Shown here in pieces: positions 22,801 to 28,700 of a stretch of 37,651 bases of DNA (the stretch's first letter is position 1; every line of letters starts with the position of its first letter). The DNA is from Macrostomum lignano (Eukaryota). The position numbers were made by a program, and so were the translations under genes. The notes below the pieces were generated by a model. The model searched no databases, was not told the DNA's origin, and saw only the letters and a list, made by a program, of their open reading frames with translations. The DNA lies in NCBI GenBank assembly GCA_002269645.1, contig NIVC01000042.1, positions 662,444 through 700,094 on the forward strand, written 5' to 3'.

Positions 22801-25386
22801 ACCTCAGCCAATCAAATTTAGTTTAGCAGGGTGCTGCTATTTTTGTTCCTACCTTTCTACCCCTACCACGTCAGCACGTTACTAAACCTCAGCCAATCAA
22901 ATTCAGTCGGGCAAGTCGTTGCTATTTTTAGCAATATACTTTGCTACCCTTCCATCTTAACACTTGACAAAAGCAGCACCAACCTCGTGAGGCCCGAGAG
23001 TTCGCATGTTCTCGTAGGCGTAGTCGCTCTCCTCCTCCTCTTCATCCTCCTCCTCCTCCTCTTCCTCTTCGAATTCTTCGGCGTCATCCTCCAACTGCCC
23101 GATAGCCGACGATGTAGAGGGCGCCGAAACGGTGATGGCACCGTCTCGACGTGGCTGTGTCGCCGGATCCGGGGCTGGCTGAGGCCCAGACGACTGGACC
23201 TGAGTCGCCTGCTGCGTCTTGATCATCTCGTAGGTGCCGCCGCCATCTTCTGGTTCGCTAAGAAACTCGTCGTCTTCGTCATCCTCGGATTCTTCCTCGA
23301 ATTCTTCGGCATCTTCGGCGTCGGCGGCAGCGGCTGCCGAAGTGCCGGCTACCGATTTTTGCACCTCCCCGGCTACGACTTTCTCCATCTTGCTGGCATC
23401 CTTTTGATCCGCTTTATCTTCTTTTGCCTTTGACTGGGCATCGTCCTTCGACTCCTCAATCTCTTTGCTCTTGCGCTTTTCCTTCTTGTCTTTTTTGTCC
23501 TTTTTGTCCTTTTTCTTGTCTTTCTTGTCATCCTTATCTTCCTCATCATCTTCCTCATCCTCATCCTCATCTTCGTTCTTCGACTTCTTATCGGACTTGT
23601 CCTTCTTCGATTTCTTTTCCTTCTCCTTTTTATCATTTTCCTTTTTGCCTTTCTTGCTCTTCGACTTCTTGGATTTTTTGTCATCCTCTTCGTCTTCATC
23701 CTCTTCTTCTGCCTCTTCTTCTTCCTCGACCTCCTTGCTCTTCCGCTTGTCGTTCTTATCTTTCTTGTCTTTTTTGCCCTTCTTGTCCTTCTTGTCCTTC
23801 TTATCTTTCTTGTCTTTCTTGCCCTTTTTCTTGTCCTTCTCTTCATCCTCCTCATCTTCATCGCCCTCATCTTCTTCCGCATCTTCTTTCTTTGCTTTCT
23901 TCGACTTCTTATCGTCCTTGTCCTTCTTCGATTTCTTGCTATCCTTATCCTTCTTGCTTTTCTTTGACTTTTTGCCGCCGTCAGCTTCATCTTCTCCTTC
24001 TTCATCGTCCTCATCTGCTGCTGCCGATTTCTCCGAATCCTTTCGAGACTTTTTGTCCTTCTTGTCCTTCTTCGATTCAGATTTATCCTTCTTCTTATCT
24101 TTGGACTTCTTGTCCTGCTTTTCAGTCTTATCCTCATCTCCTTCTGTCCCGGTCTTCTCCTTACTGGATACAGCTTCCGTTGTTTCTTCATCTACCTCTT
24201 CCCCGTCTTCATCTTCTTCGTCTTCCGTGTCCTCGAAGTCGTTTTCCACCTCAGATTTCTTGCTCTTAGCCGATGTGACAGACTTTCTGTCCTCGTCGTC
24301 GCCTTTGCTCTTTCCTTTCTTGTTATCCTTGCCAGACTTGCTGTTCTTGTCTTCGCTATCCTTTTTCTTTTTGCTTTTCCCTGTTGGTTCTTCTTCATCA
24401 TCATCTTTCGGCACGTCGATTTTATTCTTTGTCATCGCCTTCTCTGCTTTAGCCTGAAAGGATTATTAATTTGACGCATTGAATATGATACTTTATTTGA
24501 CACACTCAGAAAATTCTAAAAATACATTTTTAAAAATCAAAATCTTACGAGCTCATCCTGGAGAGACTTCAGTAGACTTGACTTTTTAGAGTCCAACATC
24601 ATTATCTTTTTTGTTGGCTGGAGCAAAAAAGAAAGGAAAACTAATTTGATATTGATAATAGCGATTACAATTTTCAAGTCGCAAACGACTTCTTTACGAG
24701 CTAAAAGGTAGAAGTTACCTGAAAGTCCTTTACTTCCTGCGTAAATTCCTTCTTTTTATCGCGTAGCTCAATGTACCTAAAATCAGATTTGAAAATCGAT
24801 TACATCAAACATCACACAGAAGATAAATCTCCAAATATAAATAACTGAACCATACAAACCTTTCCTGTAACTTTTCTGCATCGTCGTCACCTTTCAATGA
24901 TGATGAAAATGTCTTCACCTAAAAATTAAATAATTGCAATAATAATGCATAGAAAGTTACTTTGTGAAATTTAATTCCATGTACATGTAAATTCTCGTTA
25001 CACTCTTAAATGTGCACCTAAATATTACAATATAAGAAATAATTTATTACATGAAACTTAATTGAATTAGATACATAACTTTATTAAATAATAGAATAAA
25101 AATTATGACTAGCATGAAACAATATCTCCATACCACACTTAAAGTGGATTTAAAACTATTCTAAGCTGCCTAAAATGAGAGCAAAGAAGATCCCAGATAT
25201 AATTTGAAAGTTAAAATACAAGGCATTATATTGAAATCGGTAAGGTGTTTAAAGTCAAGAAAAAATACAGATAAATTTGTTCTTAACCTTATATAAGTTT
25301 TTTTATAAAATTGCAAACGTAAGCAGAACATTTACCTCCTTCACAAAGGTCTCAACTCTTTTTTTCAGGTCACTGAAATCCACCAT
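13830..25386 (-). CDS. NPHP1: Nephrocystin-1 (21 exons, about 1150 aa; one -1 frameshift in exon 12)
   Basis: Exons: 25386-25336, 24918-24860, 24776-24719, 24617-24549, 24453-22984, 22545-22448, 22159-21992, 21518-21437 (acceptor uncertain), 21332-21270, 20395-20311, 19772-19666, 18058-17987, 17923-17670, 17584-17505, 17311-17244, 17122-17069, 16097-16007, 15393-15204, 14850-14809, 14716-14597, 14000-13830. All are GT-AG with matching phases except exon 12. SH3 [61 protein letters not shown] and C-terminal IQDFL..EPFSMEE match the human NPHP1 sequence as recalled. Confidence 0.92.
14064..14360 (-). mobile_element. Tandem array of four 66-67 bp minimal Helitron-like units plus one extra 3' terminus
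   Basis: On the minus strand each unit reads TCCATATACTAAAAATG...GTGCCGCCCCGAAGGGGGGCAC-TAGATTG-CTAG: a 5' TC, a subterminal hairpin and a 3' CTAG, joined head to tail. Confidence 0.7.
14403..14507. repeat. 30-bp tandem repeat (GCCTTGACATCTCAGCAATTCCCCTAGTAA), about 3.5 copies
   Basis: Read directly; a related copy lies at 36124-36164. Confidence 0.85.
14953..15164. repeat. 16-bp minisatellite (CAGCACCGACCCACCT) in NPHP1 intron 18
   Basis: Read directly. Confidence 0.92.
15465..15945. repeat. 7-bp-based repeat (CAGATCC/CAGATAC) with a higher-order repeated segment, NPHP1 intron 17
   Basis: Read directly. Confidence 0.93.
16389..16983. mobile_element. Probable MITE (TIR ACGGGG(C)GTCCGAA) with a SINE nested inside
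   Basis: ACGGGGCGTCCGAA at 16389 and TTCGGACCCCCGT ending at 16983 are imperfect inverted repeats; no clean TSD. Confidence 0.45.
16530..16886 (+). mobile_element. tRNA-derived SINE, copy lacking about the first 12 nt
   Basis: Near-identical to the reverse complement of 6209-6562. Confidence 0.75.
17352..17447. repeat. (GACA)n microsatellite with an ACTAAGACAG interruption
   Basis: Same composite motif as 255-817. Confidence 0.9.
17449..17493. mobile_element. 45-bp micro-MITE (TIR CAAGGAC(T/G)AC, 8-bp TSD GACAGACT)
   Basis: CAAGGACTAC...GTCGTCCTTG, flanked by GACAGACT at 17441-17448 and 17494-17501; a homologous copy lies at 21131-21183. Confidence 0.7.
18745..19555. repeat. About 41-bp minisatellite (CCACAGTGCTTTGGGGTTGCCTCAAAGCTCCCCTCCTCCAAC), about 20 copies, NPHP1 intron 11
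   Basis: Read directly. It explains the long repeat ORFs at 18709-19603. Confidence 0.96.
19985..20195. repeat. Degenerate ~38-bp tandem repeat (GAGTGAGGTGGTGGGCGTGGGTGTACA...)
   Basis: About 5 diverged copies read directly. Confidence 0.75.
20560..20608 (-). mobile_element. Helitron-like 5' terminus
   Basis: The minus strand reads A|TCCATATACTAAAAATGAGTTGTTTGTTTGT. The first 17 nt are identical to the 66-bp units at 14131-14328, and the preceding base is A, as expected for an A|T target. Confidence 0.55.
20690..21066. repeat. 34-bp minisatellite (GGGGGCAGGAATTGGGGTGGAGCCCTGTGCACAT), NPHP1 intron 9
   Basis: Read directly. Confidence 0.93.
21131..21183. mobile_element. 53-bp micro-MITE (same family as 17449-17493), 8-bp TSD GCAGCAGC
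   Basis: CCAGGACGAC...GTAGTCCTTG, flanked by GCAGCAGC at 21123-21130 and 21184-21191. Confidence 0.75.
21529..21968. repeat. (TAAC)n microsatellite, NPHP1 intron 7
   Basis: Read directly. Confidence 0.97.
22705..22935. repeat. Three degenerate ~90-bp units, each starting CAGCCAATCAAATT and containing TGCTATTTTT
   Basis: Copies near 22708, 22805 and 22889 in NPHP1 intron 5. Confidence 0.7.

Positions 25387-28700: not shown

Follow-up and report, generated by a model that had tools for sequence, protein, structure and literature searches.

Do two genes of the ciliary transition zone that stand head-to-head in the flatworm Macrostomum lignano share one promoter? The question is raised by the terminal 37.65 kb of contig NIVC01000042.1 (GCA_002269645.1, Mlig_3_7), a stretch of 37,651 nucleotides referred to here as the window, in which NPHP1 lies on the minus strand and tectonic on the plus strand. 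The locus from which the annotated tectonic protein was taken matches window positions 15687-37651 with 100% identity over 21,965 bases, which fixes the place of the window on this contig and bears out the flatworm origin assumed in the original prediction. That prediction, made from the bare sequence, had put the NPHP1 ATG at 25386 (minus) and the tectonic ATG at 25732 (plus) with 345 bp between them. This is exact: the A of the NPHP1 start codon is 25386 (CAT at 25384-25386), and the distance from start codon to start codon is 345 bp (25387-25731), at 30% GC. It is also correct that the two genes come from distinct transition-zone modules, NPHP1 from the NPHP module and tectonic from the MKS module (PMC4794247). 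The interval 25336-25807 takes in the spacer and both first coding exons. We consider it plausible, with a probability of roughly 55%, that the spacer is a shared bidirectional promoter through which the two modules are co-expressed; the argument is one of geometry and of analogy with other ciliary genes. The elements on which it turns are these:

25387-25731, no strand: spacer between the start codons, candidate shared (bidirectional) promoter region, single-copy, without tandem repeats
25336-25386, minus strand: NPHP1 coding exon 1, 51 nt, 17 residues, with GT donor at 25335-25334 (GTAAAT)
25687-25804, plus strand: tectonic exon 1, with ATG at 25732, signal-peptide-like; annotated 5' end 25687, donor GT at 25805

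Identity and arrangement of the two genes

Is the minus-strand gene really NPHP1? Exons 1-7 splice through GT-AG introns into a single frame of 657 codons that runs from the ATG through an SH3 domain, introns 1-6 measuring 83-438 bp. The further exons are listed below; exons 2-7 all have AG/GT borders and are in frame.

24860-24918, minus strand: NPHP1 exon 2
24719-24776, minus strand: NPHP1 exon 3
24549-24617, minus strand: NPHP1 exon 4
22984-24453, minus strand: NPHP1 exon 5, 1470 nt, rich in Lys/Asp/Glu
22448-22545 and 21992-22159, minus strand: NPHP1 exons 6 and 7, SH3 domain
13830-20362, minus strand: C-terminal exons of the nephrocystin homology domain, approximate ends from tblastn
20309-20362, 17xxx-18059, 17670-17914, 17504-17585 and 17239-17325, minus strand: homology-domain exons, approximate, from tblastn
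16006-16107, 15204-15392, 14582-14856 (two pieces) and 13833-14003, then the stop codon, minus strand: further homology-domain exons, from tblastn

The Pfam models SH3_9, SH3_2 and SH3_1 match the exons at 22448-22545 and 21992-22159 (E 5e-10 to 2e-8), and acidic runs lie on both sides of the SH3 domain. For the C-terminal part, a human NPHP1 sequence, used as a lead only, gave seven colinear minus-strand exons in tblastn between 22161 and 13869. One exon of the window (17670-17930), run through an exhaustive phmmer search, matched 66 proteins. Those from Bulinus, Liolophura, Anneissia and Glandiceps are named nephrocystin-1, and the others include Schmidtea NPHP1, an Owenia protein, one from Diceros bicornis (rhinoceros) and a 397-aa annotated fragment of M. 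lignano that maps onto the window exons down to 13833. A profile search with an alignment that included this human NPHP1 sequence gave at least 120 mammalian matches, mammalian nephrocystin-1 among them, and no invertebrate NPHP1 locus among the matches listed; a protein search with a 111-aa segment of the homology domain found a single vertebrate fragment and no flatworm protein. At the other end of the gene, the peptide of exon 1 can be aligned to the N-terminal helix in the NPHP1 orthologues of five further species, V11 and E17 being the same in all; its 12-residue motif aligns to the orthologue sequences ALKKTVDQIIKE, VVKKKVDSAIKE and ELKQQVDSLLSE. Exons 1-4 together encode a charged, helix-like N-terminus that by its sequence character fits the coiled-coil region expected there. 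The open frame has no ATG upstream of 25386 and closes at the stop codon 25450-25452. On this sequence evidence the minus-strand gene is NPHP1, with SH3 and nephrocystin homology domains.

The exon-5 segment is an insertion of ~490 low-complexity residues rich in Lys/Asp/Glu, which separates the N-terminal helix region from the SH3 domain; with it M. lignano NPHP1 reaches ~1130 aa, where most animals have 680-810 aa. A comparable charged insertion is present in the 986-aa NPHP1 of Schmidtea.

The plus-strand gene is BOX15_Mlig007096g4, and the annotated product was mapped to nine exon blocks:

25687-33497, plus strand: tectonic gene, protein PAA62235.1, 620 aa
25687-25804, 26611-27180 (three exons), 28014-28241, 29213-29440, 30343-30468, 31527-32120 and 33234-33497, plus strand: tectonic exons, positions approximate
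25657-25659, plus strand: in-frame upstream ATG of the tectonic frame, outside the annotated transcript

Plus-strand open stretches match the Pfam families DUF1619_N (Cys-rich; PF25752, E=3e-10) and TCTN_DUF1619 (PF07773, E=2e-12). A rough concatenation of exons matched an M. lignano "hypothetical protein" (BOX15_Mlig007096g3) over its full length with 87% identity, and also tectonic-1 of Lingula, Oratosquilla and a snake, Lingula tectonic-1 being the best named match outside Macrostomum (E=3e-31). The protein has a hydrophobic N-terminus, signal-peptide-like as judged by eye, and ends in a C-terminal hydrophobic tail. Domain and orthologue matches thus identify the plus-strand gene as tectonic, and the original prediction named both genes correctly. 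Both are already annotated, though merely as hypothetical proteins.

Which ATG starts tectonic? The coding part of exon 1 (25732-25804, 73 nt) encodes MMVSSWIALFILSSVLCGVLSQSE, then GTAGTAAG. The annotated protein is 5'-partial and opens with SNPRAWLHGSTFQASMMVSS, from which it follows that the transcript model begins 45 nt before the ATG, at 25687. Use of the in-frame ATG at 25657 would put 25 extra residues before the signal peptide and bring the spacer down to 270 bp. Since the tectonic proteins of Lingula and Oratosquilla open directly with a hydrophobic signal sequence, 25732 is favoured as the start.

Could the arrangement be an artefact, either because the genes are not truly adjacent or because exon 1 is foreign to NPHP1? 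The published Mlig_3_7 assembly is redundant and repeat-rich (PMC5730564), and the public NPHP1 models disagree from one near-identical copy to another (a 397-aa 3' fragment, a 416-aa 5' fragment or a full 1132 aa). The junction is nevertheless identical on four M. lignano contigs, exons 1-7 are in frame with canonical splice sites, the 1132-aa model of one copy (L005) runs unbroken from the spacer through the entire NPHP1 region, and the exon-1 peptide aligns with the N-terminus of NPHP1 in other species. An artefact is therefore largely refuted and very improbable. The pair is real, its identities, orientation and distance all being confirmed, with NPHP1 at ~13.8-25.4 kb (minus) and tectonic at 25687-33497 (plus).

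On the contig analysed here the 397-aa NPHP1 model stands as a separate gene and exons 1-7 are without any model. Residues 1-41 of the 397-aa product (19664-19774) have no NPHP1 homology and look intronic.

The spacer as a candidate shared promoter

Bidirectional promoters of animals serve divergent genes whose start sites lie less than 1 kb apart. NPHP1 and tectonic are such a pair if judged by their gene models: the annotated 5' ends, at ~25440 (minus, NPHP1) and 25687 (plus, tectonic), both fall within the spacer, ~245 bp apart. The M. lignano annotation was built from RNA-seq (PMC5730564), and these positions are ends of RNA-seq-based models, not mapped cap sites. The NPHP1 end is taken from two near-identical copies (L003 and L005), whose minus-strand models stop at locus positions 9754 and 9756, equivalent to ~25440 in the window; the resulting 5' untranslated region (UTR) is ~54 nt long and has no upstream ATG. 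In orientation and in the ~245 bp between 5' ends the pair resembles bidirectional promoters in general. It differs in composition, mammalian ones being typically CpG islands whereas the M. lignano spacer has 30% GC and A/T tracts.

How would such a promoter work? The spacer would form one nucleosome-free region with two core promoters, and activators bound in it or in the compact first introns would drive both genes in ciliated cells, so that the NPHP and MKS modules would be made together. That both products are needed at the same structure speaks for this arrangement. In M. lignano, sequence reaching no more than 2 kb upstream of the start site was enough to reproduce the tissue-specific expression of the genes tested (PMC5730564), which implies that regulation in this animal is mostly proximal.

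Two further features of the spacer were noted. One is an inverted pair of A and T runs:

25455-25472 (left arm) and 25672-25689 (right arm), no strand: inverted A-run/T-run pair, 83% complementary

Read on each gene's own strand, the arm has the form ...TTTTTTTGTCT and either coincides with the annotated 5' end or lies a little upstream of it. The arms may be symmetric poly(dA:dT) promoter tracts, or they may have arisen by chance in AT-rich DNA. The other is the 9-mer TTTTAGCGT, which occurs twice (25491-25499 and 25587-25595), with a related third copy, TTTTAGCAA, at ~25538. It is probably not meaningful, since an AT-rich stretch this long should contain about one repeated 9-mer by chance.

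Points against a shared promoter and other readings

Against a shared promoter weigh observations on motifs, on the surroundings of the spacer, on trans-splicing and on gene order in other animals. The first of these concerns the X-box, for which three weak candidates were found:

25601-25614, plus strand: X-box-like GTCAACAGGTCAAC, 2 mismatches to GTNRCC-NN-RGYAAC, weak RFX candidate
25624-25636, no strand: X-box-like TTTACTTAGTAAC, perfect right half AGTAAC, 2 mismatches overall, weak candidate
25704-25716, no strand: X-box-like GTTGCATGGTAGC, perfect GTTGC half-site, 2 mismatches overall, in the annotated 5' UTR of tectonic and 16 nt upstream of its ATG

No X-box (GTNRCC N0-3 RGYAAC) with one mismatch or fewer is present in the spacer or in ~1 kb on either side. 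The three 2-mismatch sites exceed the 0.7 expected under a first-order Markov model (P ~0.04), which speaks for a shared promoter, but 13% of the 345-bp windows in this sequence have at least three such sites. Forkhead core motifs are at background density in the spacer, without enrichment. The same X-box scan found nothing in the upstream regions of either gene that were scanned in Lingula, Bulinus, Liolophura and Owenia; since it is blank at orthologues in these four species, its sensitivity is limited and it is uninformative either way.

Compactness is not peculiar to the spacer. The original prediction had held that the spacer stayed compact and free of repeats in a region where repeats inflate the introns. 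It is single-copy, with no tandem repeats and no second copy within the window, and to that extent the description is accurate. All the non-coding DNA from ~22273 to 27222 (NPHP1 introns 1-6 and tectonic introns 1-3) is equally free of repeats, however, the lone nearby non-coding array being a 41-bp hexamer repeat at 22232-22272, just past the left edge of this zone. The property belongs therefore to ~5 kb around the spacer and not specifically to the spacer. Nor do the four assembled copies help, as they differ at 7 alignment columns in the 5 kb around it, mostly by single-base indels in homopolymer runs. Being near-identical, they are not independent, carry no conservation signal and have no footprinting power, and footprinting among them failed for want of differences.

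Are the annotated 5' ends the true ones? Between 30% and 39% of M. lignano genes are trans-spliced to a spliced leader (SL) (PMC8629364, PMC5730564), and good AG acceptors lie in both 5' UTRs, preceded by polypyrimidine: tttttcag/A at ~25421 (minus) and ttgtctaatcccag/G at 25697 (plus). The true start sites could accordingly lie elsewhere. This is the basis of a second reading, in which the real starts are further out, each upstream of the other gene's start, and the outrons are removed by SL addition; the spacer would then be transcribed on both strands and there would be no simple shared promoter. The sole TATA-like element of the spacer, TATAAAA at 25565, is in keeping with that, being far from both annotated 5' ends and, at ~120 nt upstream of that of tectonic, too distant to serve it. 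The annotated ends at 25440 and 25687, on the other hand, lie upstream of the two AGs, and neither is itself preceded by AG, so that the models were not cut at a trans-splice site there. Overlapping divergent units of this kind seem to us quite unlikely. An SL trans-spliced operon is a different matter: operons of M. lignano are defined as same-strand genes spaced by less than 1 kb, of which the downstream one is trans-spliced (PMC8629364), and NPHP1 and tectonic diverge on opposite strands. A search of the window for the spliced-leader sequence found none.

Is the pair found in other animals? The original prediction proposed a microsynteny search and named loss of the adjacency in close relatives as a refutation; in the distant relatives searched here the adjacency is absent. 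Over the 10 kb either side of tectonic, tblastn found no NPHP1 in Lingula, Oratosquilla, Pelomyxa or marine protist contigs, and over the same distance around NPHP1 it found no tectonic in Bulinus, Liolophura or Owenia, so that the adjacency is absent from all six other animal loci compared. Human NPHP1 matches lie on a 242.7-Mb contig that we take to be chromosome 2, and the human TCTN genes are on chromosomes 12 and 10. Absence in Lingula, Oratosquilla, Bulinus, Liolophura and Owenia means that neither Spiralia nor Bilateria had the adjacency ancestrally; the pairing is, on present evidence, lineage-specific and not part of an ancient synteny block. It would have arisen by rearrangement within the flatworms.

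What lies beside these genes elsewhere? Tectonic has as neighbours Pelota, an unnamed 215-aa divergent gene, an SGL-domain gene and RICTOR in Lingula (a brachiopod), and unrelated genes in Pelomyxa and the marine protist contigs. The divergent partner of NPHP1 is FAM177 in Bulinus (a snail), an unnamed 290-aa gene in Liolophura (a chiton) and a bZIP gene in Owenia (an annelid). At four spiralian loci there is thus an opposite-strand upstream neighbour within 0.8-2.8 kb, each time a different one. Divergent promoters seem to be the usual setting for NPHP1 and tectonic, with a varying partner, and with divergent neighbours this common the head-to-head arrangement alone means little.

Another reading is that of a chance neighbourhood: a neutral rearrangement brought together two genes that keep separate core promoters and ciliary control elements, the short distance has no function, and any co-expression would arise wherever the genes lay. 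It would account for the failure to find the adjacency in the five animals named, for the unrelated divergent neighbours within 0.8-2.8 kb in four spiralians, for the want of a strong motif in common and for a compact, repeat-free zone that extends over ~5 kb. It fits less well with three other points. The ~245 bp between the 5' ends leave scant room for two fully independent promoters. By our own estimate, which takes ~20 transition-zone genes among 22,000-44,000 genes (the gene number of PMC5730564) in random order, ~0.01-0.02 adjacent transition-zone pairs are expected per genome, and divergent ones about a quarter as often; the wider class of ciliary genes should, again by our own estimate, supply several neighbouring pairs in each genome. 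A transition-zone pair is by this reckoning unlikely in one genome yet to be expected occasionally across many, and this one was found post hoc in a scan. Lastly, tectonic is coupled to another transition-zone gene in pancrustaceans, as described next. Weighing these points, we regard a chance neighbourhood as possible but doubtful.

Comparable gene pairs and the rest of the window

The neighbour of tectonic in Oratosquilla is B9D2. On Oratosquilla oratoria CM102926.1 (locus positions 4927-10060) a gene of 176 aa with a Pfam B9-C2 domain lies just upstream of a tectonic-1-like gene; its exons read like those of human B9D2, which is the identity we assume. Between the stop codon of this gene and the tectonic ATG, on the same strand, there are 54 nt, and two 1-mismatch X-box-like sites lie 200-240 bp upstream of its own ATG. 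The two look like a dicistronic pair of MKS-module genes. The Drosophila genes B9d2 (CG42730) and tctn (CG42731) are stated to "overlap in the genome", and a single upstream primer was used for the reporters of both (Vieillard et al., PMC5037411). As the stomatopod pair matches the Drosophila locus, B9D2-tectonic coupling may be old in Pancrustacea, and presumably it ensures joint expression. The M. lignano pair resembles it in that tectonic is coupled, within tens to hundreds of bp, to another transition-zone gene. The differences are that B9D2 belongs to tectonic's own MKS module whereas NPHP1 belongs to the other, that the B9D2-tectonic pair is a same-strand tandem, dicistronic-looking, whereas ours is divergent, and that the former is known in a stomatopod and a fly, the latter so far in one species.

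A second precedent is human TMEM138-TMEM216, adjacent ciliopathy genes (Joubert syndrome, JBTS2) that are co-regulated by RFX4 through a conserved intergenic element (PMC3631122). Here too non-homologous ciliary genes became neighbours in one lineage; the intergenic element is shared in TMEM138-TMEM216 and a candidate in M. lignano. The human pair is head-to-tail, ours head-to-head; RFX4 binding and co-expression have been demonstrated experimentally for the former, whereas the latter is known from its sequence, and the canonical X-box that would be expected of a pair of this type is absent from the spacer.

EVC and EVC2 are head-to-head, and their products form a complex at the ciliary base. 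They are counted among neighbouring ciliopathy genes (PMC3631122). NPHP1-tectonic resembles them in that the two genes diverge, have a short 5' region in common and encode products that work together at the ciliary base. EVC and EVC2 differ in making up one complex, in being a pair conserved across vertebrates and in having a kilobase-scale spacer, while the modules of NPHP1 and tectonic are separate and genetically redundant. Divergent pairs of genes with related functions are a known sort of arrangement. The B9D2-tectonic and TMEM138-TMEM216 precedents raise the prior that such couplings function and are no proof for the M. lignano pair.

The same precedents suggest a bolder idea, which we think rather unlikely: that transition-zone genes have been repeatedly and independently drawn into tight pairs in different lineages so as to match the dosage of gate components. 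The M. lignano pair would then be a selected cross-module (NPHP + MKS) unit, with a ~250-bp promoter that does not rely on a canonical X-box. The tight pairs that can be cited for it are B9D2-tectonic in pancrustaceans, TMEM138-TMEM216 in mammals and NPHP1-tectonic in Macrostomum.

In a narrow literature search no published description of the NPHP1-tectonic pair was found, and the term "bidirectional promoter" occurred in none of the ten papers that it listed; Mlig007096, NPHP1 and TCTN were not found in the supplements of two M. lignano papers.

What would a shared promoter mean? At ~250-345 bp it would be a very small control element, acting in both directions and specific to ciliated cells, possibly of practical use for their two-colour labelling. 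The pair would also join the few known cases of physically coupled ciliary-gate genes as a cross-module example, with a bearing on how cells balance the NPHP and MKS modules. A chance neighbourhood would have no wider meaning. As M. lignano can be made transgenic, the shared-promoter idea is testable, and the main value of the locus is that it offers a compact, experimentally testable candidate promoter in a flatworm open to transgenesis.

The rest of the window contains two further protein-coding stretches; an Rfam scan of all of it gave no RNA gene.

34857-35636, minus strand: annotated gene of 259 aa, acidic and Ser/Ala-rich, without Pfam match, tail-to-tail with tectonic
8448-9458, minus strand: uninterrupted open frame of 337 codons, matching Glycos_transf_4 (E=2e-30)

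The 259-aa gene lies ~1.4 kb from the tectonic stop codon and recurs in each of the four locus copies. The 337-codon frame, which contains a DPAGT1-like FADDALNLRW motif, lies on the same strand as NPHP1 and downstream of it, and is GC-rich and hemmed in by tandem-repeat arrays. Tandem repeats make up ~29% of the window (our own sum of arrays, from 61 rows of overlapping calls) and most of the length of the distal introns in both NPHP1 and tectonic. Many of the arrays are GC-rich minisatellites (periods 16-66) amid AT-rich DNA, and GC content per kb ranges across the window from 28% to 65%.

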